A stretch of DNA of 62,426 bases, filler included, from Sluysia triapertura (lineage: Eukaryota): the NCBI GenBank assembly GCA_046118255.1. It is 5 parts of 5 records of this genome, joined end to end, with 100 filler letters (N's around TTAATTAATTAA, not from the genome) between each part and the next. Parts side by side here need not be neighbours in the genome. Positions count along the whole stretch, not along the records: positions 38,700 to 50,225 come from JBJNIA010183712.1; 4 more parts are not named here. One strand, written 5' to 3'. The translations under genes were made by a program, and so were the position numbers. The notes below the pieces were generated by a model, which was not told the origin of the DNA, ran no database searches, and saw only the letters and a program-made list of their open reading frames with translations. The first letter of the stretch is position 1. Each line of letters begins with the position of its first letter. Positions 86 through 50,225 of the stretch are shown in pieces.

Positions 86-345
86 ATTAGTGGTCATGGA
101 TCACAGTAATTTAAGAAATACATTGTATAAAATCTTTTAGAATGCATCATTGCTGCTGATATAACTTCTTGTCGAACACTAAGTCGTTCGTCAAATGTAA
201 AAACATCATCATTAAAAAGTATCAACTCTTGACTTTCATCTACATTATCTAATTTATCATTATCACTTTGACTATTTTTCAAAATATCATGTTTGTCTAA
301 TAACAATTCCAAATAATGAGAACTTGTCCAAAAATTATTAGTCAT
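82..345 (-). pseudogene. CCNC: Cyclin C N-terminal fragment (intronless, premature TGA, cut by hAT insertion)
   Basis: MTNNFWTSSHYLELLLDKHDI...LSVRQEVISAAMMHSKRFY...CDP*PLM resembles cyclin C MAGNFWQSSHYLQWILDKQDL...LKLRQQVIATATVYFKRFY...IDPVLM. Confidence 0.85.
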
Positions 346-933
346 TTTGAAATTTAAATTACAAAAATGTTATATCTTTTTATTTTTAGGCTACGAATTA
401 TTTTTAAGCGTGAACGTTATATTTTACTTCTGAATAATTATGTTTTAAACTCATGTAACAAAATGTTATGCCAAAAAATAAAATTTCTTTAATATCTCTT
501 ATTTTATTGCACACAAATTCTTGGCTACTTCACAAATTCACAATTGGACATACATTTATAATTTAAGTCTTAAGAGCAACAAAATGTACAGTAATAAGAC
601 TGATTTGGCGTGCAATCAAATAAAAATCAAAATTTAAATTGGTGCATTTAAAATTTTATTGAGCTTGTTATGGAAACGATATCTATTGGATGTTTAAAAT
701 TATGTGTGGCAAAAGGCACGCTACTAAAATGTATTAAATAATGACTATCAGCAATGACAATGGATGATGTGTACAAATTGAAACTATCATTACTGATAGT
801 GGCAGTTACTGCAAATAATATTATAAGTGTGTATTGCTAATGATTATATCGATACTAATGAAATGGTATACAAAAATATAAATGATAATAATAACAAAAT
901 TATGTAAAAACATACAATATTGAAATCAAAAAG

Positions 934-990
934 CATAAATCTTATACTTTGTTAGATACATGATCTTTCTTTTGTTTATCTTCTTTCTTA
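934..990. promoter_or_regulatory. Conserved upstream box of chimeric family (copy 1)
   Basis: CATAAA...TACATGATCTTTCT aligns by eye with 16885-16950 and with the reverse complement of 42945-43008. Confidence 0.6.
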
Positions 991-1445
991 AAATAATATT
1001 TATTTAATTATAATGTAAAAAGATATAATTGAAATTAATGTTTTTAAAGTTCCTAAAGAATGAATGTTGAAGGATTGTGAACCTAGGAAGTTTTAAATTA
1101 ATTTTCACGTTTTCAATGATAATTTAAGATGTAATTGTGGTTCTAATGTTATGGATAATGAATAAAATGTTTTAAATGAATTTTTAAATGTACATATATG
1201 TTTTTGAATATATGTGTAGTTTGGATATTGAAAGATTGTGAATTTAAATGTTTTAAAGTATGAAAAGGTTCTAATAGTGTGAGTAGGTAAAATATAAAAT
1301 GTTAATACATATGATATTGTGAATAAAAAATATAATTTTAACCTTAAGCTAAATGCTGTCCACCACCAACTGATTAATGATCTTTACTCATTGTATATCA
1401 AAATTAAAGTGAAGATTTGCTTTGTACAGTTACAAGACATAAGAC

Positions 1446-1510
1446 GTTTACTGTAACCGGACCCTGCTCAAAATATTTTTGCCGTAGGTTTAGATTTAAG
1501 AAAATCACAG
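1446..1510. repeat. Dispersed repeat; inverted copy at about 9158-9218
   Basis: GTTTACTGTAACCGGACCCTGCTCAAAATATTTT matches reverse complement GTTTAATGTAACCGGACCCTTCTAAAAAATATTTT. Confidence 0.65.
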
Positions 1511-1721
1511 CATTAGTATCAATAATAGTTTACACGTATAGTGATTGCCTATTTGTTATCATATAGTGTATAATGTATTTAATGGTATTCGTAAAAATAA
1601 GAAGTTGCTCTTATTTTTAAATAAGAATTTCACTTAGACAAATAATTAACTAACGATTTTAACGTGAAAACACGAATAAGAGTTTTTTATTTATAATGCT
1701 TAGTACTTTCTTAATAAAAAT

Positions 1722-1800
1722 ATGTATAATTTGTATAATAAATGTATAATGTATAATAAAATGTATAATAAAGAAATGTATAATCTTTAATTTGTATAAC
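1722..1800. repeat. Degenerate ATGTATAAT minisatellite
   Basis: About 7 imperfect TGTATAA(T) units. Confidence 0.7.
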
Positions 1801-4219
1801 TAAAACTGTAAATCTTCTGAAATTATGTTGATTTAAAATTATTCAAATCTTTATAGTTTTTTATAAATCATGTTTATTAGTCGATATATTATTGATATGT
1901 CTAATAATATTTTCATAATTTATATCTCTAATAGTGATAATATTAATATTATTTATTTTCGCCATAATGTTTATTATTTTCTATTTCTAAAAATTAATAA
2001 ATTTAATTTTTAAATTTTTATATTTAATACTATAAATTTGTTAATTATGATACTACGAAGTTTAGTATTCACGTTATTTCGATTTTATAGGTAGTTGAAT
2101 TAGTTTATCCAAGTACTTAGAACATTATGTAAAAATGAGCCTCCAATATTAACACGCATCAAGTTTATTATTGTCAGTTTACAAATTCTCGTAAAAATGA
2201 TTAAATTTTTTAAATTGAAGAGAGTAGGGGCTGAAATTATTCTCGTTAATAATTTAATTCTCAATTACAAAGTCTAATTTTATATTTTAGACCATTTTTA
2301 TTAATTCTTCACTCAATGTTATGAAAATGTTAGTCGATTTATGTTGCTCTGATTATGAGTACCTGAGTAATTCTAGTTATCATTGGTAAATATTAACGAT
2401 AGAACTAATCTGAAGTTACTTTATCCACCAATATTGTTAGTTAATGATTTTATGTCTAACGTTAAATTTAAATTTAAAATTTTACTGAACTTGAATACGA
2501 ATCTTATTAATTTTTTTATATTAAACTTTTCTCTGTTATTTCTTTAGCTTAGTCATGATTATAATACGCATAAAGCATTTTTTGGTTAACATCACAACTA
2601 TCTAATAAAATCAATTAAAATTCTTATTTTCTCAAATAGAAACTTATTTTCTAAAAAGGAAAACTTCTTTTTGAAAATTCGCTTCTAAATCTTACTATTA
2701 TTCAGTTATTAACGTAACACCTTTTTATTTAATGTAAAATCATTTACATTAGACTGGTCTGGATCTCATTCACAATATGGAAACATCAAATTATTCAGCA
2801 AGATTAAAATATATTTAAATCAAACTGTGCTTAAATTAAAGCTGCACTAATATTAAAGAAAATGTGAAAGAATATTATGCTAAAGCTAAATCTCACAATT
2901 TCAAATTGGTGATAAGAGTTTAAGTTATGATTCAATTGTGAACAAAGTCCAATCTCCTAAATTTAATAACCATTTAAGTGACCATACAAAGTTATCTCTA
3001 CGAATTTAGAAGTAACATTAAATAAAAATAATAAAACTAAAATATTCATTCAAGCATATATAAATTTGTAGCAATTGATATCTGTTTTAATTTATGATGT
3101 AAAATATAAATACCAATAAATCAAGTGTATTGTAAGCAAAAACTTTAAAAAATTCAGAACAGTTTAAAAAGATCAAAGATTATTTCAACTTTACTATTTA
3201 TTATTATTTGGTGAAACTTATTTATTAAGGCTAATGCTTGAAAAGCAAAACAATGCACAAAGAATCTTCATTAAAATTTAGAAGGAATATTTTCTGCTGT
3301 CTGTCCATTTAATGCGTTATTCTATTGTAAACTCTTCTGCTCTTAACGTCACTTTAATGTCATCAAGTATATAAAAGATCTTATATTTTCATTAGAGGCT
3401 CTAAAATAATAATTTTAAAAACTGCTACACAAATTTAACCATACAAATTAGCATTTCCAGATTATTTCAACTGTATCCTTGAATATAACACATCTATTAA
3501 TAATCTTAAACCATTCAGGATTAACTACCAATAATTCATAGTGGCCTTCTTACCCTCAAAACGAATGGCCATGAACAATTAAACGAGAAAATAACTATCT
3601 AGAAATTATAAACACTCGATAATTTTTCTTCAATAATCTTATCTTTTGCATTCCTTGTTGGATGTTTTAATTCAAATATAAATTATTATCCCACGCGAAC
3701 TAAAAAATAGCAGTATGGATTCCTATAATAATGAAGCACAAATGCCGTACTGAAAATAAGAAAAATTTCGAAAAAGTTGACTATATCTCAATAAGGAATG
3801 AGATTATAATATTTCACATTGTTAATACTGTACTGATACCTTTGATAATGAACCACACTGAGAATATGAAGGTAATAAAAACAATTTTTCATCAAAACCA
3901 ATTTGTATACAATGCCATCCAAGCCTACAACTACAGCACAGAAACTAGCCATAGTTCCAAAAGATGTTTAGAAGTCTCACTTCAAAGTATCTATTTTAAT
4001 ATTTGAAGGCGTTCAAAGAATATCTCTAAACTATGTTATTATCGTATTTATTAAGGTTACATATAAAAATAAGTTTCTTGTTAGTCACGTTATGAACTTT
4101 CTTAAAATATTACTTAAGGTAATTTTAAAACTTTATTTACTCTCCTTACACCGATATCTACATCAAAACAACACATGGAACATTTAATTGGTAAAACAAA
4201 TATAATAAAACTTATCGCA

Positions 4220-5290
4220 TTCAGTTTGCGATCATCAAAAACCATATACTTCGCAGTATTTAGCGGATTCTATTCGGGAATCATCAGACTTTGATTGACG
4301 AACATCACTATCTTCTTCGTTGATCTCAACCATGTCTTTTATTTCTTACACTTGAATGATGCCACCTTGACAGGTTTTACTAGTGATCATGAGTTTATGA
4401 TTAATGGCATAAAGCCTTTTAAGATATAAGATTCCTTTAGCTAGTTCAACTTCATCTTGATGTAAATCCTGTAGCTTTTTAAAATCACACAAAATTTGAA
4501 TTGCGCTTGAAGTACAAGGTTCATGAGTATCATGATGAATGTCGCATCATTCACAAAATCAGTTACATCATTTCGCAGAGACAATTCAGTTTCATTAAGT
4601 AAATTAATTGCCGTTAAACTCTAAGAAATATTTTTAATAAATTATACGTTGGATTAACTAAAAGCTTTTTGAAATAGTGAGCGTTTTTTATGTGATATTC
4701 CAAGGTTTAGCTTCATTTAACTGAACACGTGGTGAAAATAGTCCTCTATATTTGAAAACTTCTGACAAGGCATAATGTGCATCTGTCTCGGTATCACTAC
4801 TTGTTTTTACTAGCAGCATCTACTGACAACTTAGATTCCATATACAAGTCGGTTAAAATTACATACTTAACTCGAACTGGTTTTGAAGATCACGAGCAAA
4901 ACATCGCTTAAGATAATCTACTGCTGCTTTACTGATACAATAGCTTAACATATTTTAAAAATACTTAGAACCAGCTGCACTAGAAACATTAACAATTGAT
5001 TCTTTGGACGTTAGCAAATAATTTACTAAGGCATTTGTAAGAAGTAATATTTAAGGAACATTAATATTCATTACATCATCATACTTTTTGCTTTAACATT
5101 TTCCAAACTTTTTTCAACATCATCGGATAATTTGATAATTATATGTTCATTTCTAAAACAAACTTCTGACTAAGATACTTCTTTTTTTCATTGCATTTTT
5201 CTAATATCTTTTATACTGTCTTCTGAACGACCTCTAATAAATAAGTGTACTCCAAGTTCGGCAAATAAATTCCACTACTAGCATCCGTTA
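4220..5290 (-). pseudogene. Decayed multi-exon gene with very short introns, possibly helical/TPR-like
   Basis: GT-AG mini-introns at about 4621-4647, 4823-4866 and 4932-4964 separate coding-like segments (KAAVDYLKRCFARDLQNQFE; TETDAHYALSEVFKY; LQDLHQDEVELAKGILYLKRLY) that contain stops and frameshifts. Confidence 0.45.
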
Positions 5291-7386
5291 TAAGTGCTAC
5301 TTTATAAATTAAATAAAGGTTTTCATATTTTTATTTTTAAATAGTTACTCGATTAAAACAAATATATTTAATATGTGTGTCATAATGGTTGGTAATAATC
5401 AAATCGTAAAGAAAGTAAACGAGGAAAATATTAATACTTATGAAATGTATGCGATAAAAATGAAAACTAAGGACTTTTAATATAGAATACATTTTATTTT
5501 AATTAACATATATGTTCTAATATTTTAATCTGCATCCGTTCAAACATACCGATTAATTCGAACTCAGAAGCTTTTTGTAAAGGTGCCACTCCAATGGTAA
5601 TTTTAATAATAAATAACTATTTGAGTTCTGTTGTTATACAACTTCTTTGATCTAATTTATTTGCTATTTCATTGTTCCTGGTGGTATTAAAATACCGAAC
5701 TTCTCAATTAACATTATGAACATTTCTTATTTAGATACATTATCCTGTCAATGACAAATCATAGCACACAAACTAAAAAGGTACCGTAAAAATTGCTTTG
5801 GGAATAAATGCCTAAATAACACATACAACCGAAGTAACACTACATTTCCAAATTTCTTAATGTATAGGACTTCTTTTTGTCAAAAGCTCCTGTCAGAAAT
5901 CATTAAATTTTAAACTGACAGTCAATTAATTCATAAATAGATCAAACAATACCACATCCACTCGACTATTCAACTGGCTTATCTAAATCCTTGCGAAGAC
6001 TTACAAAAGATAACACATAAAATATTGTTTTTCCAATTGAAATATTGCATTTATTGTTATATTTATTATTGTGTGTTATTGTAGTAGCTATTTTTATACA
6101 TATAAACTTTTAAACATTTTATTCGATTAGATTTGATTATATCTATATCTATATAATTATAATTATATCTATAAACAAAGTTAATTAATTTTCTTATCAC
6201 AATTTACCCACCATGAGAGCCACATTTAGCTAAATTCTATTTTTATAAAATTGTATAAAAATAACGAAAATCCTTCTGTACTTACTTTACAACTTAAAGC
6301 TCAAAAGCCAAAATATCTTCTTAAACACCAAAAGTACTATGTGAAGTATTTTCAAAAATTTCATAGTTTAAAATTTTAATATTGATGGAATCTTTGTTTT
6401 GAGCAAATATAATTTGTAAATTAACATTGTTGTTTTCGTATTGGTAGACTAAAAAGAGATTAAATGATTGAGATTATATTTACATCTGCACGGTAACTCA
6501 TAATTAACTTTATAAAGTTTAACATTCTAATTCGATATAGAGCTGTGTTATAAACTACAATAAAGTAAACAAAGATAATGAAACATCAAACTTTTAATGA
6601 AATCTTAAACTTAAATAAAATGGTGCATTACTTTTGGGACAATCTAATAAATAAAATCATTATAAACAAAAATTCGATTAATTTTATATACCTTTTATTT
6701 GACATAAAGTAAATTTATTATCTACCCTATATCTATTATTTATTCATCGTTAATTTTATTTTCTAAATATTTGAATTTATATAAAGATAAATATGAAAGA
6801 ATGAAAAATAAAAATTAAAGAATTGTGACAAGGTAAAATAAAAATTATTCTGAATGTTCAAAAATTAATTTATTGTTGAAAAAGAAATATTTACAGATAT
6901 TTCAGTAAAAATAAAGATTTTCACGACTTGTATAAGAAAGACTGTACAATCTTCTTCACTGAAACTTCTCTATGGTGACAATTGGAGCTCTTCGAACGAA
7001 ATAAAATAAATCTATTTATTAGAAATAGAAGTTAGTAAAAGTTAACATTTTTAATATCACTATTATAAATCTTGAAACATCAAGTTTATTTAATTTTACT
7101 GATAAAAAACCAAATAATATGATCATTTAAAGACTTTTGCATTTAAGAGTCTTTCAGTCACAATCAGAACAAGAATATTATTTGATTTTTTTCTTTAAAT
7201 TTATTATCCAATAAATATTTTAGATCCTCATTTCGAAATGTATCCAACTACAAAATAAAGTGCAATTTCGATGAACAATGCAGAACTACTACTATTAAAG
7301 TGCGAATACTCGATAAATGCTACTTCAGAATAATGTCAGGTTCTTTCACGTTTACAAAATAAGTTGATCAATTACAAAATTCGTGT

Positions 7387-38699: not shown

Positions 38700-38706
38700 T
38701 ATACCA

Positions 38707-38776
38707 TAAGCGCTTTTGAGTACTTTCGCGGTAGATATGAGCGCCATATAAATTAATATATTATTATTATTATTAT
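38707..38776 (+). mobile_element. 3' tail of L2-type LINE (or partner SINE) ending in (ATT)n
   Basis: TAAGCGCTTTTGAGTACTTTCGCGGTAGATATGAGCGCCATATAAAT is nearly identical to the reverse complement of 50391-50437. Confidence 0.75.
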
Positions 38777-41486
38777 CAAATTATTTGATACTTTAATTGA
38801 CTAATTCCTTTATTCGTTGTTTTAAATTTTCTACTGCTTTACAAAATAAATTAATTTTGAACTTGTAAAATTTTTTATGGAATTTCTTGTTGCTTTGCTA
38901 AACATACTTGATTTACAATCTCTATATTTTTTAAAAATACGTTTGATTAAAATTTACCTCGTTTCTATTTTTACTGCGCCTAATTTCATATACATTTGTA
39001 GAAAATGCCAAGGTACAACATAATTTTATTTATATTCGAGAGTTTTTTGGTATTTTGGTAGACAATTAAATTCATTTAACTTATGACGCAATAAAATGAA
39101 ATTATCAAATCAAAATTTAATTGATTACCTAATTTAATAATGACAGTATTAGTATTTAGTAAATTTAAAAATAAATTATTTAATTTATCTATATTGCACA
39201 TCCATTCGAAGCCAATGTGTGGTAATGGTTAACAATGTAATATTAACAACTTTCGCACAATGTTTGTCGTCAAAGGTTATTCCACCTCTTACACAAGTTT
39301 AATAAGAAACTAAACACATCGGAATCAGTTAAATCCAGTATAATAATCTTTGGATTTAATTCTGACTTTATTTATGGAAGTGTTTTTAGCCAAGAAATGT
39401 CTAATTTTAAGCACGCCATTGCATAGTTCTTGCTATATTATATTATTAATTCTTGTTATATTATAAGCCGTGTTATAATTGCAATTATTTCTACCAATAT
39501 TCTATTTTGGCGTTAATACTTTAATATATTCTAGTGCACAGGATATCCATAGCTATGTGATATGGAAAATACCGTTGGATTTATCAACACTATTGGAATA
39601 TACATCATTATGATAATCTAGTCAAATTTAGGTAAAGTACTTGGTAAAAGTTTTTAAGAATCGATAAATTTAACAGCGAAATTTTGAAGTTTAATATTAT
39701 ACGAAAAGAGTTCCTGGAAGTTCCAAACAAATGTATAAATGCGGAAATTTGGTTTACAAATGTAATATAAAACAACCATAATAACAAATTATATGATCAA
39801 GCAACAATATGAAATAATAAGGCCAAATTTGAAGTGGACATTGTAACAAATACTAAAATACCAAAACAAAATAATATTACTATAATTAAAGCAGAACAAC
39901 ACAAGTAAAGAATAAATAAATAAATGTCATAATGCAAAACAAAAAATACTATATAACAATGCAAGTTGAAATTCAATTTGTTAATTGAAAGTATACTTTG
40001 CGAAGTGCAATCGAAGAAGATATATTAATTTGACATAAACTAAACATATCTGTTATATTTAGTTTATTTAATTAGTTATATTTAATATATTTAGTTTAGA
40101 ATCCTTTCAAGTCTGTATATATTGTTAAAGTACAAATAAACGAATAAAATAATAACAATTATTATTATGTTATACTATATAGCATTACATTATATTAAAT
40201 TAAATATAGGTTGATTCCTTATAAAACATTTATAATTTTGTTAATAGAACTTAATTTTAGTAAATGTTTATTACGACAATTCTCCACGTAAAAAGCAATA
40301 AATATTGCGTTTTAGCCCAAAAAATTTAAAGTTGAAGAAACAGAAACTTCAACTGATAAACTAATCTTGCAATTATCAATTAACACTAGTAAAAGTTCAA
40401 TATTCGTAACCACTAAAAGAATTTTGAACTGTTATTAATAAAAAACAATATTAAATAATGAACTAATTTTAATATAATGTTAATAAACAAAGGGTGTCGC
40501 AACCAAAGAAATACAAATTAAGTTTCCGATAAAAATGAAAAGAAGATTCTCCGAAATTATTTAATCATACAAATTAGAAGGAAGATAAATAACAACAACA
40601 AAATAGTAGTGAGTCTTCCCAAAAAAGGTTAATTTAATTTTAGTAATAAAATGATTAAAATAACAAAAATGAAGATTTTAATTAATTAATTAAATTTCAG
40701 ACTTAATTTTTAGGTTTTATTAAGGTATTTAAAATTGTTGGATTCTTTATGAGTTACTCATGTTTTCTAGATGTTTTCACTTTCACCAATATGATTCTGT
40801 TTTCTACACCATTATGTTAATTATTATTAATTATTAAATTTGTTTTTATTATTAAATTTATCTTTAATGTAAGTAACAATAATTTAACTTCTCAAATATT
40901 TTGAAAATTTCAAATACTTTATAAGGTTACTTGAAGGTCTCAAATGCTTATCAATGTTTCAGACATTCTTAAAGGTTGATGAAGTCCTAAATAGTCTCAA
41001 AGTTCTCAAGTTCAATGGTACTTTAACCGGTATCAAGCTTCATCAAGGGTATCAACATCTTATAAAGATTTTGGGAACTTCAAGGTATTCTTCAATTCTC
41101 AAAATGGTCATAGATGTTTTCATGTTCGTCAATCACACTCCAATTATATTTCATTATGCTTTATCATTTTTATTAATTATTTCTACATCTTTCAATTCCA
41201 CATCTTTATTCATCTCCCATTTGGCTGCTGGGCAATCCAAATGTATCTCATTCTCGAGGAAAAGGTCTGACATCATACATCCTAATTAATAAAAAATAAA
41301 ATGACCACTACACGATAAAAATTCAGATACCATCAATCCAAGAACTTACTGTTACATGCAGAAATTGAAATGAATAATAAATCAACAATCAAGTTTAGCT
41401 CGTCCTCCCAAAAGATATTCTAACACGCCTTTCCTTAAAGAATTACTTTGGTTATTGATAAAATCATTGATTCCAAAATTATAACT

Positions 41487-41580
41487 TTAGACTTCAAAAA
41501 ATGAACTGACCGGTAATCCAACCCGGAACCTCTCGCTTCACAGCTGTAGTTCGATGCTCTGACCACTGAGCTATCAAACA
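41487..41580 (-). mobile_element. tRNA-derived SINE / tRNA pseudogene (copy 1)
   Basis: A box TAGCTCAGTGGTCAGAGC, degenerate B box GGTTGGATTACC, and a non-tRNA tail (TGAAGTCTAA) shared with 46734-46818. Confidence 0.75.
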
Positions 41581-41944
41581 ATTTTAGATTATTATAGTCA
41601 ATTATACTATCATTATTCTAAATGGAACTTTAGGCCTTTAACACAACATAATAATCATTTATAGAACTTATATTATGTCTCTTGGAGATAAACAAAAATT
41701 TGGAAACAAAAATGAATGCCAGAAAAACAAGAATTTGAACAAAATTAGCTGCGTGACAGGTTATGTACCGTTTGTTTCAAAAAACATATAAATTACGGAA
41801 ATATTATATATTTAAGAAAAAGGCAATGCTTTTTCTGAATCAGAAATATTATACTGAATGATTTATTTTAAGTACTGATTTTCTATTAAGTATTATAGGT
41901 CGGTTTTTAATTGTTCCAATTATTATTGTTACTACTTTGACATT

Positions 41945-42345
41945 TATTTCTCTGAATATCTTTCCTTAGATTTATCCATGTGTACTTTACTTGTATCATC
42001 ATCATCATCATTTTTGAGTATAGTTGCAAGACATTGCCCTTTGCTTCGATTAGCATCCTTTCAGTATATCTACTAAAGAGACTTTTTTAAGATATGTTTT
42101 TGTTTTCAATTTGTCTTCATTTGAACTAGTACATTTCTAGCTAGCGCTGCTGATTCTGCTTCTTTACTGGCTAGCAATCGATCGTCTTGTTTCATTTGGT
42201 AAGGATAATTATCCTTATGAGATACATAAATTGAATAAATTACAGTTCCATTTCCACCTTTTTTTTCATGCACCTGTGGGTGTATCTAAATCCACATTTA
42301 TTGTTTTCACTAATGTTTCCATTATAACAAACTTCTACCTGTGAG
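41945..42345 (-). pseudogene. Decayed coding-like fragment, unidentified
   Basis: METLVKTINVDLDTPTGA*...NYPYQMKQDDRLLASKEAESAALARNVLVQMK; GC is above background and several stops are present. Confidence 0.35.
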
Positions 42346-42944
42346 GTAACTGGTACTTGGTGTAGTGGTCAACCCCATAAGTTAAGATTGAAAATAACCT
42401 CATTAAAATAATTTCAATCACAATCATACTCTGTAACTATAATCACCACACAATTCACCACATAAAACAACAATACACAATCATAACACTTTACTAACTT
42501 ACATTCACCAACGAAATAATCTCTATCTCAAACATTCACAACTCAATAAACCACTACTTTCACTCCAAATAATTCATAACATCCATTCATCAAACACTTC
42601 ATCAAACAAGTCAGAACCATAACACAAATTTCACAAATCACAAATACAATAACATTCAAATGTTCTTATTAACTATTTCAGAAACAAAGATCATCTCACC
42701 TAAAACAATAATCAACAATAACATTCCAAATCCACTTCACATAACCATACCCATCATCTGCAATCATTTTAATAACATCATAATATATACAAATTGTTCC
42801 GCAATTAACAATTAGAGTCAAAATAACCTCAATTTCCTTCTTAACAGCATTTTAATCTTTATACACTTCCAAAACAAAAGTCAGATAACTTCAAAGACTT
42901 TGTTATCTAACCGTGAAGTTGATATTCCTTAGTTTTCACTCCAT

Positions 42945-43008
42945 ATATGTAAGAAAAACAAGACATATCAGAAAGATCGTGTAATTAATAGAATTGAAGA
43001 TCTTTATG
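42945..43008. promoter_or_regulatory. Conserved upstream box of chimeric family (copy 3)
   Basis: Reverse complement CATAAAGATCTT...TTACACGATCTTTCT. Confidence 0.6.
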
Positions 43009-43148
43009 TATTACATTTCACTTAATAACAATAATAACAACAATAATTCATCACTTCTGGTACTGTTGTTGTTATTATTGCTATTTTAATTGTTATTATT
43101 ATTCTAATTATTACAAATTCTATATTATTATATACCTTAATCTTACCA

Positions 43149-43149
<1 letters not shown>

Positions 43150-43206
<57 letters not shown>
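43150..43206. repeat. (ATT)n microsatellite within a degenerate trinucleotide tract (43020-43250)
   Basis: Perfect run flanked by imperfect triplets. Confidence 0.95.
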
Positions 43207-43208
<2 letters not shown>

Positions 43209-43317
43209 TTAGCATTACTATTATTATTACATCATATTAATAATTATTCATCAAACAAATTAAATTCTTATTACATAATCTAAACAAAGCACCACAACAC
43301 AAGTGTGATTTACATCA

Positions 43318-43367
43318 CCCAATCAGATAATCTCTGCATCGTCACGGCAATAACGAATCTGATTGGG
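43318..43367. promoter_or_regulatory. Inverted CCAAT pair (CCAATCAG-N32-CTGATTGG)
   Basis: CCCAATCAGA...TCTGATTGGG about 300 nt upstream of the ATG at 43661. Confidence 0.7.
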
Positions 43368-43660
43368 CAGAGAGAATTCATTACAACTAATGACACATTT
43401 CTTTGTATTCGAATACAATTACTCAGACAATAATTATTCATAAAAATAGTATCAAGAAAATGAACACACAAAACAGACTAGAATAATCAGCAGCCAATTA
43501 ATTGCACACAATTCGTAATAAATCAATTCAGCCATTGTTAAAAAGTACACTATTAATCACTCAATTTTAAAAATCAAATTCTTATTCAGCCATAATTATT
43601 TTTAAAAACAGACAGGTGATAAAAATTAGACAGACATAGATTAAAAAAGACAATTAAAAA

Positions 43661-45280
43661 ATGAATTCAGAACATAGAAAAGACTTCCTATTATCGTGTT
43701 ATCAAGACATTACTAAAAGCTTGAACAATGTTTACGAAGACAAGTTGTCTATACGTAAAAAAGAGATAACTTCCATGTCTTCACCAAATTTATTTACAGA
43801 ATTTTATTCTCAATTGGCACAAATTAAAGTTTATCATAAACGTAATCCCGATGGAAATAAATCATTATCGTTATTAGAGTCATTGTCATTATTAGAATAC
43901 GATAATTTTAATAATATACGCGAAAACGTTGAAGGAGCTGGTGCACTAGTTTTTGAGTCTACTGATGAAGAGAATCATATTCGATTTTTAGATTTACGCG
44001 AATTTAATCAACTAAGTGTTGATCGGAAAGTATCACACTTTGACTGTGTTATGTACTTGCTTAAACTTAATAAGCTCTATGAGATTCCTAAAGACAAGAA
44101 GAATGTTTTACGCTATTATTATTTATTAAAGTTGACAGAACATCCAGATGATTGTATTGCTCGTTCTAAACATACGATAAAATTAGTAAATGCCGATTAT
44201 GTTATTAGTGAAGAATTAGATGATGCTGCCGATGATGTTGTTAGTGGAGAATTAGATGATGCTGCCGATGATATTATTAGTGAAGAATTAGATGATGCTG
44301 CCGATGACGTCGTTAGTGAAGAATTAGATGATACTGCCGATGATGTTGTTAGTGAAGAATTAGACGATGTTACCGATGATGCTGTTAAAGAAGAATTGGA
44401 TTCATACCAATCACCAAGTGTTTACCGAATCTTAGATAAAGTCGCTGATGATGTTCCCGATGATGTTGTCAAAGATAACCATGATGCATTAGACCAGTTG
44501 CTACTCTACATCCTTTCAAGCAGAAACAAATGTACTCGGACAGTATTTCTCATGTCTGCCTCCAATTCGATAAAGATACAGCGTAACGATATGTTTAACA
44601 TTTTTAAATACAACACGTCTGGAGACTTTGAAGGTAATAAATTAATGCTGAATTTTAACTTATATTTTGTTCACAATTATAATTTTTATATTAATTATTG
44701 TAGAATCTGCAATTCATCATGTAACGAAGATGGACCCATAAACGAAGAAACACTGTATATCATCAAATCATTAACTGTGTGTATAAACTTAAATAAAATT
44801 AAAATTTTAATAAATTCTTTTGTTAACAGTCTTAGATTTAATTTTAGTTATAATATGACAAATTACGACAAATTCAATAACAAAGAAAAGTGCAATTATA
44901 TTAAACCCAGTTATATCACAACCGGGATAGACTATAAAATAAACAATGATCAAACTCGTAAAGGTGTTAACTCATATAAAAAGGAAAATTCTTATAAGAT
45001 CACTCTAGAGGTTAAACATAGCTTTAATATAGGAAGTCTTGAATATGATATTTGCAAAGTTGTAGTAAATTGTACACAACACAAGACATATCTTAAATAC
45101 GATGACATAGTTATTTCAGATAATCTTACGTGCCGCAAGGTTACAAATAGCTTAATTCTATTACAATCAAAGATTAAAATACCCAAATCATTTAACTTTA
45201 ATCATATTAATTTACAACCATGTACTCACAAGCCCTCCATAATTTGGTTAATTAACATTAAATTAATCGAACATTTCTAA
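43661..45280 (+). CDS. SF3A3: Intact chimeric protein (539 aa): SF3A3/Prp9 fragment + acidic 12-aa repeats + lineage-specific tail
   Basis: MNSEHR...YEDKLSIRKKEITSMSSPNLFTEFYSQLAQIKVYHKRNP...TDEENHIRFLDL...LYEIPKDKKN resembles SF3A3 INSDHR...YDDKDGLRKEELNAISGPNEFAEFYNRLKQIKEFHRKHP...TDEEGYGRYLDL...LFDIPKERKN. Homology covers only about the first 175 aa, so this is a derived copy rather than the ortholog. Confidence 0.85.
   Translation: MNSEHRKDFLLSCYQDITKSLNNVYEDKLSIRKKEITSMSSPNLFTEFYSQLAQIKVYHKRNPDGNKSLSLLESLSLLEYDNFNNIRENVEGAGALVFESTDEENHIRFLDLREFNQLSVDRKVSHFDCVMYLLKLNKLYEIPKDKKNVLRYYYLLKLTEHPDDCIARSKHTIKLVNADYVISEELDDAADDVVSGELDDAADDIISEELDDAADDVVSEELDDTADDVVSEELDDVTDDAVKEELDSYQSPSVYRILDKVADDVPDDVVKDNHDALDQLLLYILSSRNKCTRTVFLMSASNSIKIQRNDMFNIFKYNTSGDFEGNKLMLNFNLYFVHNYNFYINYCRICNSSCNEDGPINEETLYIIKSLTVCINLNKIKILINSFVNSLRFNFSYNMTNYDKFNNKEKCNYIKPSYITTGIDYKINNDQTRKGVNSYKKENSYKITLEVKHSFNIGSLEYDICKVVVNCTQHKTYLKYDDIVISDNLTCRKVTNSLILLQSKIKIPKSFNFNHINLQPCTHKPSIIWLINIKLIEHF
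44192..44407 (+). repeat. 36-bp coding tandem repeat x6 (ADDVVSEELDDA)
   Basis: GCCGATGATGTTGTTAGTGAAGAATTAGATGATGCT units. Confidence 0.95.
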
Positions 45281-46138
45281 AAACATTTTTAAATTAAATG
45301 TCGTTTCTTTCAATAAATTATATAGAATTTACCTTGTACCTTTTTCATCTTATTGATTGTATTAATAAACTTTCTTTACTGTTAAAAGAACATATCCATT
45401 TGAGTGTAGAAAGAAATTGTGAATGTAAATAAAAAATCAAAAACTCGTTGACAGTTTCATTTCTTACATCAGAGATGAGAAAATCTCTGATTTCCAAATA
45501 TAATCAATAAAGAAAAATTAAAAGTAGTAAAAATGTAAAAAATCAAAGTAGTTTTATAATTTTATCGAACTAGTTGAAATATTATAAAACAAACTACAGA
45601 TAAGTTATCATTACATTTACAATAATTCGTTACTTAACTTATGCAGATAAGTCACGAAATTGAATAATTTACATATGTATATCCTATTTTTTAACCATAA
45701 TAATTTTGGGTTATTATTATGGTGACGAGGAACGCAAGAGCATAACTCATAGTATAAAAATAAAATAAGGAATTAAGATGAAACAATAGGATGAATTGCG
45801 ATAACAAAATATTTAAATCAAAATAAAAGAATGAAAGATACGAAGAAAGAACCATTTATAATATTAAAGTACGTTTGTTAATTAATTTAAGCAAAAATTA
45901 ATTTGCTTAATTTGATAATTTAGTGAAAAATGTTTGCTCAATGCTAAATTTAATTAGTAACGTAAAATTCAGTTTAAGTATAATTATGATACCCATAATG
46001 TATACTCATTTAATATAATTAATTATATTCATGAGGATATCAACTTTAATATGTTATTGTAATCGACGTGCGACAAACGGTTGACGCATAAAAGATTTCT
46101 ATAGAAAATAAATTTGGTATTTGATTAGTTTTATGTAG

Positions 46139-46216
<78 letters not shown>
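46139..46216. repeat. (ATT)n microsatellite
   Basis: Perfect trinucleotide run. Confidence 0.95.
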
Positions 46217-46733
46217 GTGTTGTTGCTATATCGTATTATATTATTTTATATTAAATTATATATTGTTTTGTATTGCATTATATTATATTACTTACTGCAT
46301 GATCGATTTTTATGAAAATTGCGAACGAAAACTAATACATTATGGCAAATTTCAACTATATTGTTTAATATTTTTTTGAATTCGATTAATCACAGAATTC
46401 ACTTGTTATATTTTTAGGATTCTTTAAACTTCTATATTCTTATTTCAATTGTTTGGACATCAATTTGTTTATCCAATTTAATTTCTGTATTTAGATCTAT
46501 GAGTTAAATTTATTAGAGCATTATCTACATTAATACTTTCACTCGTTTCGTTATTCCATTTGTTTATAAAATTAAAAACAATTTTTGCTGTTTCACATTT
46601 AAAAAATTGACGTTTGACTTTATCTTAGTTTGGCCATCTTAGGCTAGTCGACTAAATAACGTTTTGTTGGGGTAAAAAGGTCTAAAGTGCCATTTGGTAA
46701 AATTGACTATAATACAATAAAAGTGTTAGACGA

Positions 46734-46818
46734 GGGTGATAGCTCATTGATAGAGCATCGAACTGCGCAATGAGAGTTTCGGATTCGATCCCCGGTCAGT
46801 CCATTTTATGAAGTCTAA
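46734..46818 (+). mobile_element. tRNA-derived SINE / tRNA pseudogene (copy 2)
   Basis: GGGTGATAGCTCATTGATAGAGCATCGAACTGC...GGATTCGATCCCCGGTCAGTCCA plus the shared tail; acceptor stem pairs poorly. Confidence 0.75.
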
Positions 46819-48478
46819 CAGCTTCATATGCACTGATTATTATTCTACTATGTGGTGGTTCAACTCAATTGTTTGAAATATTGTTTCACATAAATAATTA
46901 ACGACCACACCTAAGTCACTTAATATATTTAATATCAATATTTACAAGCTCTAAAATTATTTTAAAAATGAAATTTCTATAACGCAACTGCAAATTCTCT
47001 TAATTTTCTACCACTCCTTTTGTCACACTTACGTGTTCCCAACCTTCTCTCTTTTTGCTTTTCTAACTTATTTCTTTTACAGTCCCCTTACATGATCACA
47101 AGTTGTTCCATATCTTACACATAATTCTACATCTCTCTACACTAAACACGATTTCACGAATACTTTCCCTACGGATAATGATAATCCGTAGATTATTCAA
47201 ATAAAAAACGTGTATCAATCATTCAAGATCTCAATCACAGATTTTTGAGTAAAATTTTGAGTAAATTTTATTAATTTTAATTGTAAATTATTTTATAAAT
47301 TGTAAATTTTGGTATTAAATATTCCTTTATATTATTATTGCCTTATATTAAGTTTGCTTCTTGTTAATACACTTAATAAACTACGATGCCTATTTAGTGT
47401 AACTAAAATTCCAAGATAATATTTTGATTTTAAATTTAATTTTTGAGAAATATAAGTATTATATAAGTGTAAGTGTAAGTGTACACTTAAAAGATTTTAA
47501 AAGATTTAGTTATAATACATAATACATAAATAGTTATTTGCAAAAAAATTTTTATTTTTTATTTAACCATCATCTTTCTTAGTTTATACCTTATCATCAA
47601 ATAACTTCGCTTTTCAACCTCAAATAATTTTACCTGCTTTAAAAATTGAAACTAATTCAAATAGACTGATTATAAGTGAATAAATTTGTTGCATTTTCAA
47701 TAATAGTTTTGTACATTTTGACTTTGAATTACATTAATATTCCAATTTAATATTACAACTTCAAAAAATTAAATTAAGTTTGATCGTTATCTTTATTAAG
47801 ATTTGTTAATTTTTAAACAATTTCATTTACAATTTCTCAATTAGCATCACCCATTATATAATAAATTATGTAATCAATTTAAGATTAGTTTCATTTTTTG
47901 GATTATTTAAACAAAGTAAAAAAACTTTTCAAAAAATATATTTAACAAAACATTTAAAATATGCTTTTTTTACCTTTATTTTTAAAATTTTGCATTTTGA
48001 TCATCAGGACATATATCTTCGTGATAATATGAACAATTTCAATTGTATTTTATTTTTCTTTTACAATCCATTGATTTGGACATCTTATCATTTATTTAAA
48101 TTCAATTAATGGTTACGCATTGATTTGTGTTTATCTTTTAATAAGTGTATTTGACATTTTGATTCAATCATAAAATTAAAAAATTTAGGTTTAAATAAGC
48201 TCAATCACTAATATGAATAATAATATTTATGTGACTGTTAAATTTAACAATAAACAGTGAAATGTAGAATTATAATACATATTTCATATTTTAAGCACCG
48301 TCAAACAAAGTCACGTAAAACTTGCGAAATATGTATAATTAACTTGACTGTCACGGAATTGTATAAATTGACTTGAATATTTTTGAAAAAATGAAATAGA
48401 TTTAATATATTTACTACTTAATTTTCATTTGGTACTAAATATATTAACAAAGAATTGGCATGTAGAATACATTGAATT

Positions 48479-49859
48479 TCAATCAGATATACAATATCCA
48501 AAAATTTTTATCAGTGTTATGGGGTTGAGGTTAATGTTTATTTGTTGTGTGTGCATCACCAAGTTTATTTCGACAGGTGAACGTTTCATAATTTTGGGTA
48601 TATTAATAAGTCTGCCTACGCCGAGTATACTTTTAATGTTGATCGCGGTTGTCAGTTTGTAACTTAATGAGTTGATTCTACCTTTCTTGTTATATGTTTT
48701 GACTACGGCTTTGCTCATGTAAGTATTATGAATGATTTTGTCAAACCTTCGGCAATAGTTTGCTCTGGTAGACGTTTCCCTTACTTTAACATTATCGACT
48801 GTTGATTCATTAATTAGATTAATTTGTGAAGGTGAATTATTACAAACGAATGAATGTGGCGAAACATATATTAATCCTTTACATCTTAATAGAGAACAAA
48901 TTCTGTTTCTAAAATCATAAACGTTTACTGATTCCTTACATTTTGTAAAAAAAAGAATTCGAATTTCAAAATTGTGAACATTTATTAATTCTTTACATAT
49001 TAAAAAAAAACTATTTGTACTTTCGAAATTATGAACATTCATTGATGCTGTACATTTTATTAGGAAGCGAAAGCTAATTTTAAAGTTCCACTTCCGCTGA
49101 TTTTCGGTCTCCTTGAATCCCAGTTGACAGATTGGTGTTGATCTAAGATATAAATAGTAAAATATAATATGATCATCGTATATATTTATATAATCAAGGA
49201 TAAAATGATTACTTATTGCTAATTGGAATGCTTCGTCATATTTAGAGCTGGACTCGTGGTGGAAGATAGAATTGATTGCATCTCCGTGAAACAGCTTGGG
49301 CGGAACTTGAAATACTAAAATGAGTTCGTCGCCGTGCATCATCTTCGAACGAATCTCGGATGCTAAATCAAATTGTACATCGTTCGCTTGAGCAAAAACA
49401 TGACTGTACGCGTCGTACGCTAAATTGATTGGGTCGTCATGTATTGACTTGATTGGATCGTATTTAAATCGCTCATACTTTACATCATATTTACCGGCTT
49501 GAACAAAAACATGACCGTACGCGTCGTACGCTAAATTGATTGCCTCATCATGCATTAACTTGATTGAATCGTATTTAAATCGCTCATACTTTACATCATA
49601 TTTACCGGCTTGAACAAAAACATGACCGTACGCGTCGTACGCTANNNNNNNNNNNNNNNNNNNNNNNNNNNNNNNNNNNNNNNNNNNNNNNNNNNNNNNN
49701 NNNNNNNNNNNNNNNNNNNNNNNNNNNNNNNNNNNNNNNNNNNNAATTGATTGCCTCATCATGCATTAACTTGATTGTTTTCTTGGTTTCGCAATAGATG
49801 CTATTATTTATCTTTATTTTCCTTATCTGATTTTTTAGTTTGCTGTTCTTGATTGCCAA
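48479..49859 (-). CDS. Repeat-containing protein of the chimeric family, no recognisable captured domain
   Basis: Long open frame across the assembly gap, with 37-aa repeats, 19-aa NVHNFE repeats and a C-terminal region resembling the tail of the SF3A3 chimera. Start uncertain. Confidence 0.65.
49390..49776 (-). repeat. 111-bp coding tandem repeat (at least 3 copies, collapsed at 100-N gap 49645-49744)
   Basis: GTACGCGTCGTACGCTA recurs at 49406, 49517 and 49628. Confidence 0.95.
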
Positions 49860-49972
49860 ATTTCTTATTTTTAATCGTATAATGCTGAATTATTGAAAAA
49901 ACCGAATGATGATTGTCAAATTTCTTATTTTTAATCGTATAATGCCGAATTATTGAAAAACCGAGTGATGGT
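49852..49972. repeat. About 60-bp tandem duplication
   Basis: CAAATTTCTTATTTTTAATCGTATAATGCYGAATTATTGAAAAA occurs twice. Confidence 0.9.
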
Positions 49973-50174
49973 TGAATTGTTTTTTATTGTTTTACGAAAT
50001 GTCTGAAAATTCGTTCTTGAAACGCCTGCAACAATTATTTGTATTTTCTTTTTGTGTCTGCCAAAATAATTATTAATTTTTTAAAACAAAATGGCCGTCT
50101 AAATTTTATTTTTTGCTTGTCTACTTACTAATCTGTCTGATTAGTTAATTTGTGTTAGTTTGATTTTAGCACAA

Positions 50175-50222
50175 CCAATCAGCTTAGTTATCATTAAAAC
50201 GGCTAGTATTGATTCTGATTGG
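50175..50222. promoter_or_regulatory. Inverted CCAAT pair (CCAATCAG-N32-CTGATTGG)
   Basis: CCAATCAG at 50175-50182 and CTGATTGG at 50215-50222, upstream of the minus-strand ORF. Confidence 0.7.
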
Positions 50223-50225
50223 GTT

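Follow-up and report, generated by a model that had tools for sequence, protein, structure and literature searches.

In Drosophila, Stellate/Su(Ste), which derives from CK2-beta, and Sdic are ampliconic families of chimeric genes; they form tandem arrays, and their germline expression has been shown. SF3A3 (SF3a60/Prp9) is a single-copy, highly conserved housekeeping gene. Residues 71-107 of its product form an amphipathic helix that is permanently bound by SURP2 of SF3A1 (PMC9514218). The capture of host gene fragments by transposons, including Helitrons and Pack-MULEs, is documented (PMC4778049, PMC4224331, and PMC5861414). In our literature search, nothing was found on SF3A3-derived repeats, retrogenes, capture, or expansions. 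Here, we describe a reading frame in the AT-rich genome of the animal Sluysia triapertura that probably belongs to a lineage-specific repeat family, dispersed and of high copy number, originating from a captured or partial copy of SF3A3.

The window is a stretch of 62,426 nucleotides, filler included, and the part of the genome analyzed here is its 11.5-kb piece at positions 38700-50225 (JBJNIA010183712.1), with a G+C content of 20-35%. The features on which the following account relies are given below, in coordinates of the window.

43240..45257, plus strand: high-copy repeat unit at its minimum extent, defined by contig depth in DNA run X1, with the 5' edge lying beyond 43240
43319..43366, no strand assigned: inverted CCAAT-box pair, CCAATCAG-N32-CTGATTGG, 295 nt 5' of the ATG and inside the repeated unit
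43661..45280, plus strand: chimeric ORF with ATG start, 539 aa, uninterrupted, stop codon included
43661..44185, plus strand: SF3A3-derived segment, aa 1-175, corresponding to human SF3A3 37 to ~205, colinear and uninterrupted
43763..43873, plus strand: equivalent of the SURP2 (SF3A1)-binding region, SF3A3 71-107 or ORF aa 35-71, located by PF12108 and PDB 2dt7 chain A
44186..44401, plus strand: six 12-aa acidic units, an in-frame 36-bp minisatellite, aa 176-247, consensus DAADDVVSEELD
44402..45277, plus strand: orphan tail rich in Asn, Lys, and Ile, aa 248-539, for which neither a relative nor a domain was found

In the ORF listing, 43661-45280 on the plus strand was the single long frame of its region, remaining open for 539 codons from its ATG. 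The original prediction had described an intact fusion of about 175 aa of SF3A3, six acidic units, and about 290 aa of unrelated sequence, with a new start codon, and all three parts were found in this order: M1 faces I37 in the INSDHR motif of SF3A3, and an in-frame TAA lies two codons 5' of the ATG. No entry for the exact 539-aa protein is on record, and no RNA family or tRNA gene was detected in the piece at the gathering threshold. A strict GT..AG scan for introns hidden in the tail returned only two candidates, both being within or adjoining the repeat and neither having a length that is a multiple of 3; the AT-rich sequence at 44632-44700, intron-like by eye, is in frame and stop-free.

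The relationship of the first third of the protein to SF3A3 was recovered by several approaches. A phmmer search against PDB sequences aligned aa 1-169 with human SF3A3 37-200 without a break (E 2e-20) and matched aa 35-64 to the 38-residue SF3A3 peptide of 2dt7 chain A. The sole Pfam match in the ORF was SF3a60_bindingd (PF12108) at aa 38-64, with 38 bits versus a cutoff of 22.3, and the hydrophobic positions of the amphipathic helix were kept throughout aa 35-71 in the phmmer alignment. Word search returned a mite SF3A3 (P0001) as the only match, with 41% identity over aa 1-175, and the best SF3A3 identities in an exhaustive phmmer search of 1.84e9 representatives were 35-41%, the top matches being animal (fish, aardvark, and a cluster with Folsomia candida SF3A3) and ranking above those of protists. 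Ten SF3A3 orthologues share 18 invariant columns within this range, and the segment retains approximately 12 of them, as counted by eye in the BLASTP alignment. The likeness decays past ~aa 158, and a profile of ten orthologues covered ORF aa 1-172 only (hhalign, probability 99.2). Judged from these alignments, the segment is a fast-evolved fragment of animal-type SF3A3.

The remaining parts of SF3A3 were searched for around the fragment. An HMM of the first 42 residues found no exon for residues 1-36 within 3 kb upstream of the ORF, and Pfam did not report the N-terminal SF3A3 domain (PF16837) for the ORF. Full-length SF3A3 (P0001) matched the piece at 43658-44185 only when searched with tblastn, and no similarity to the zinc-finger half was detected in any frame of the 11.5-kb piece by tblastn, hhalign, or a C-terminal HMM, confirming the earlier claim that the zinc finger is absent. 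Likewise, neither the middle region (PF13297) nor the zinc finger region (PF11931, matrin/U1C-type) had a Pfam match in the ORF. Considering the missing residues 1-36, SAP-like middle, and zinc finger, the above level of identity, and the multi-copy status described below, the ORF is, by sequence comparison, not an SF3A3 orthologue. As a separate observation, P0006, located on Logan contig L001 of SRR26183974, ranks among the closest full-length SF3A3 sequences, with 41% identity to the ORF, level with the mite P0001. This contig (1698 nt, intronless, and AT-rich, with 36% GC in the CDS and 23% GC in the 3' UTR) is apparently a transcript of another AT-rich organism and showed no nucleotide-level similarity to the ORF.

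The tail is of a different nature. Its 289 codons at aa 251-539 are stop-free, while frames +1 and +2 carry 23 and 47 stops, respectively. With a per-codon stop probability of 0.082 from local composition, the probability of such an open frame is 2e-11, and 20000 shuffles yielded no open frame, in agreement with the original argument that the frame is improbable by chance at this AT content. Since the 539-codon frame is thus not a product of chance, the founder of the family was probably a coding sequence under selection. The GC contents of the tail at the three codon positions (0.31/0.26/0.29) constitute a weak signature. No relatives of the tail were found by word search, in viral contigs, or in JGI metagenomes; all 81 matches of the ORF in the exhaustive phmmer search were on aa 1-190 or the acidic repeat, and none was on the tail. 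Moreover, the tail had no Pfam domain, and its AF2 model from the single sequence had a pLDDT of 30. Derivation of the tail from a decayed SF3A3 C terminus was also considered, on account of a weak colinear BLASTP pair that placed ORF 332-359 opposite the beginning of the zinc finger, with CxxC kept. This candidate was rejected: the local score was equalled by 280 of 1000 shuffles, the semi-global z was 2.5, no second hhalign match was obtained, and a C-terminal HMM ranked the real tail below shuffled tails.

Of the 31-mers sampled from the stretch, 55% were contained in DNA run X1 (organism A) and 6% in DNA run X2 (organism B), and no RNA run contained the stretch. Logan contigs of X1 and X2 were then aligned to 43240-46100 at ≥85% identity. 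A total of 1363 X1 contigs were placed on these 2.86 kb, including 136 at ≥99%, 323 at 95-99%, 551 at 90-95%, and 353 below 90% identity. Summed X1 contig depth was 320-6900 in all bins of 43240-45255, with the maximum at 43720-43815, above the SF3A1-binding region. On the 3' side of the unit, it was 33 at 45256-45351, 17.8-20 at 45352-45447 and 45544-45735, and 137 at 45448-45543, and a 656-nt X1 contig with a depth of 17.8 was identical to 45178-45833 with zero mismatches. This flank is as AT-rich as the ORF and therefore serves as an internal control, indicating that AT-rich DNA does not attract contigs spuriously. Single X1 contigs above the ORF had depths of 70-120, so that each of them represents a collapsed multi-copy sequence. 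Thus, the ORF, together with 420 bp or more of the preceding DNA, is about 20-400 times as abundant as single-copy sequence and comprises many diverged variants, an estimate that represents the summed contig depth of the single run X1 from one organism, possibly the source sample of the stretch itself. The high-copy signal ends on the 3' side at ~45257, approximately seven codons short of the stop. Because the 11.5-kb piece holds a single copy of the unit and its 3' flank is unique, the copies appear to be dispersed rather than arranged in a tight tandem array.

These results weigh on the original prediction of a maintained chimeric protein that could act as a spliceosomal decoy, taken here as the product of a single host gene. 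The open ORF, its SF3A3 homology, the PF12108 match, and the non-chance frame would all suit such a gene, but the entire ORF and its upstream DNA belong to a family at ~20-400 times the flank depth with many diverged variants, and we consider a single-copy decoy gene scarcely credible.

In X2, both the SF3A3-like part and the acidic repeat were represented by fragments (43652-44556, 91-100% identity, low depth), with flanks that diverge at the ORF start and leave loose ends at 43622 and 43657. Such a distribution may mean that the family is older than a species split, or that the X1 and X2 samples are related.

Whether the fusion is genuine was assessed at its two junctions, since the region is repetitive. 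The junction of SF3A3 and the repeat was crossed by an X1 contig with a joint at 44180->44250, having about two fewer units and anchored on both sides, as well as by an X2 contig at 44015-44205; that of the repeat and the tail was crossed by an X1 contig at 44281-44480 (88% identity, depth 111). The presence of both junctions in independent read-derived contigs answers the concern, raised with the original prediction, that reads might reveal a misjoin, and because they are bridged in other copies, the fusion is a property of the family and not of the assembly. An artefact in which the frame was stitched from different repeat copies, or a junction was misjoined, would be in keeping with the repetitive nature of the region, with the positions at which all aligned X1 contigs differ from the stretch (43790, 43794, 43831, and others), and with the incomplete share of sampled 31-mers contained in X1. 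On the other hand, the contigs bridging both junctions are independent and come from other copies, the exact 656-nt contig runs from the last part of the ORF (45178 onward) into the unique flank, and a mosaic of decaying copies would seldom be open across 539 codons. An assembly artefact is thus very unlikely in our view. The acidic repeat itself varies within the family, as the unit number differs between copies according to the above X1 joint and an X2 joint at 44219->44448. Tandem Repeats Finder resolved it as 36 bp x 5.9 copies at 44191-44401, with degenerate echoes of the unit as far as ~aa 271, and the differences between the six units were distributed over codon positions as 7/6/6.

Sequence differences between copies provide a view on constraint. 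On the aligned stretch, 155 differences were reported, of which 40 were listed and 30 of these fell inside the ORF; transitions predominated overall. The 30 listed ORF differences were at codon positions 1, 2, and 3 in 12, 10, and 8 cases, showing no third-position excess, and comprised 8 synonymous, 22 nonsynonymous, and 0 stop changes versus a random expectation of 5.8/22.4/1.7. The listed differences between copies thus look near-neutral, although a sample of 30 differences, small and treeless, may be compatible with constraint on a subset of copies. The original prediction regarded the frame as a maintained coding gene and held that neutral evolution together with no expression would speak against it; the neutral half of this is what the listed differences show, and near-neutral variation among copies makes the decoy idea less likely.

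An alternative to an amplified fragment is a functional, expressed ampliconic family, in which the SF3A3 helix would bind SURP2 of SF3A1 and the protein, having no zinc finger, would titrate or redirect SF3a/U2 snRNP, perhaps in a germline conflict. The upstream part of the repeated unit is pertinent here. A spacing of ~32-33 bp between paired CCAAT boxes is characteristic of promoters driven by NF-Y, and the inverted pair upstream of the ATG was one of 2 matches in the piece, versus 0.00 expected, the second being located at 50175-50222 with an identical 48-nt geometry, upstream of a neighboring minus-strand ORF. The pair is a candidate NF-Y-type promoter module, and the repeated unit may accordingly carry a working promoter, which keeps the functional reading alive. 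A functional multigene family would likewise show an intact frame, a conserved helix, and a promoter-like module, and each of these is seen: the frame is open beyond chance, the SURP2-binding region scores above the Pfam cutoff with its hydrophobic positions kept, and the CCAAT module lies inside the amplified unit and recurs before the neighboring ORF. Moreover, no stop arises from any of the 30 listed variants, and parts of the family are present in a second organism (X2). These points are opposed by the missing third-position bias and near-random synonymous/nonsynonymous ratio of the listed differences, the fading of SF3A3 similarity beyond ~aa 158, a tail with a weak codon-position GC signature and no predicted fold, the absence of the stretch from the RNA runs searched, and copies that form no local tandem array. 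Overall, we regard a functional expressed family as unlikely. A more specific version, in which the SF3A3-derived multi-copy proteins would be expressed from the double-CCAAT promoter as dominant-negative or retargeting partners of SF3a/U2 snRNP that have the SURP2-binding helix and no zinc finger, being either selfish manipulators of host splicing (drive- or TE-linked) or a host gene family engaged in germline conflict, is more doubtful still.

The family may instead belong to a mobile element. In this case, the ORF would encode a protein of an unrecognized autonomous or semi-autonomous element that exapted the SF3A3 module into its own machinery, where it might, for instance, engage the splicing or nuclear apparatus of the host. 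High copy number and a divergence spectrum typical of transposable element families fit such an origin, as do an ORF whose end nearly coincides with the 3' edge of the unit and a frame that is open in at least the present copy. However, no transposase, reverse transcriptase, integrase, endonuclease, or gag-like domain was found by Pfam or exhaustive phmmer, no termini were found around the unit, and relatives were absent from the viral and metagenome collections searched, so that an element-encoded protein appears distinctly improbable. Specifically, searches for terminal inverted repeats, LTRs, and direct repeats around the unit returned none above the null, with the 5' boundary lying beyond the analyzed 43240; no CTRR of a Helitron-like end was present near 45257; and the stop is followed by just five A's, with no target-site duplication found flanking the unit.

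Returning to the preferred reading, an amplified family from a captured or partial SF3A3 copy, its history may be reconstructed as follows. The founder would have been an intronless copy of part of the SF3A3 gene of the host, most simply derived from cDNA or captured by a mobile element, where "intronless" is relative to the SF3A3 of other animals and not to that of this genome. This copy would have comprised neither codons 1-36 nor those beyond ~codon 205, acquired its ATG at I37, and become fused in frame to the 36-bp acidic minisatellite and ~290 codons of tail sequence. This unit and the DNA preceding it, 420 bp or more, would then have been amplified to tens or hundreds of copies that are now <1% to >10% apart. 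Local tandem duplication seems a less likely mode than repeated retroposition or the transposition of a non-autonomous element, although this is inferred, as no termini, poly(A), or target duplication were found. The present copy may be open because it is young or near the master, with the founder or master having probably been under coding selection. The product, if translated, would have the helix that binds SURP2 of SF3A1 but no zinc finger.

Several other features of the piece were recorded. Upstream of the ORF, a nearly G-free, sharply bounded tract on the plus strand (42390-42880; 1-7 G per 100 nt, A 41-47%, C 22-30%) lies ~780 nt 5' of it and contains no ORF, and an imperfect trinucleotide microsatellite, (TTA)~51, occupies 43072-43229; a perfect (ATT)26 is located downstream at 46139-46216. 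A tRNA-derived SINE-like pair, 77% alike and inverted (41430-41620, minus strand; 46690-46860, plus strand), encloses ~5.1 kb with the ORF, and its plus-strand copy scored 22.3 bits on the Rfam tRNA model, below gathering, while ARAGORN called no tRNA. Between the ORF and this copy, a hyper-abundant short repeat (45736-46023, core ~45806-45940) reached a summed X1 depth of up to 84,000 versus ~18 for single copy; many X1 contigs begin or end at 45806, 45861, 45890, and 45940, and by appearance it is a SINE- or MITE-like element of ~135 nt. An X1 contig at single-copy depth (17.5) connects 43288 directly with 45825 and thereby omits 2536 bp; the joint shows no microhomology, and one of its anchors is only 30 nt long. 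This joint could reflect an alternative arrangement, an ORF-less allele, or a related locus beside the abundant repeat. Finally, a second long orphan ORF is present on the minus strand at 48479-49859 (at least 387 aa readable, with an N gap at 49645-49744), containing a 111-bp (37-aa) tandem repeat at 49386-49644 and a 57-bp repeat at 48863-49059; it had no Pfam match and no word-search relative.

If the family is an amplified captured fragment only, it adds one more case of repeats shuffling pieces of essential genes, and it calls for caution in annotation, as gene calling in this genome could produce "SF3A3-like" models by the hundreds. Expression of some copies, on the other hand, would make them a naturally occurring dominant-negative version of a core subunit of U2 snRNP, retaining the partner-binding helix without the zinc finger, and a rare selfish or conflict-driven family directed at the spliceosome.

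Among the known systems, SF3A3/Prp9 itself is homologous to ORF aa 1-169 over residues 37-200, including the SF3A1 SURP2-binding region. Nevertheless, three of the four defining features of this gene, namely, the N-terminal domain, the zinc-finger half, and single-copy conservation, are missing from the ORF, which stands at 20-400 times the flank depth and 35-41% identity. Processed retrocopies and chimeric retrogenes resemble it in being uninterrupted, 5'-truncated copies with a new start and a fusion to local sequence, and its 169 aa are colinear with SF3A3 without interruption, as compared with the SF3A3 of other species rather than the parent gene of this genome. In contrast to such retrocopies, the unit includes neither the parental 3' half nor a poly(A) tail, is amplified far more than ordinary ones, and includes at least 420 bp of promoter-like upstream DNA. 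Helitron and Pack-MULE captures share with the family a housekeeping-gene fragment that is joined to sequence of other origin and occurs in numerous copies, dispersed and diverging, while Helitrons carry a 5' TC and a 3' hairpin plus CTRR, and Pack-MULEs have TIRs and target-site duplications, none of which was found for this family within an analysis whose 5' limit lies inside the unit; moreover, an intact 539-aa chimeric ORF is unusual among captured fragments. Stellate/Su(Ste) and Sdic are similar in being multi-copy, lineage-specific ORFs from an essential-gene fragment that keep a partner-binding surface without the full function, but they form tandem arrays, whereas the SF3A3-fragment copies appear dispersed and are known here from DNA alone. 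By analogy, then, the ORF family resembles both captured fragments and ampliconic families while differing from each of them in structure.
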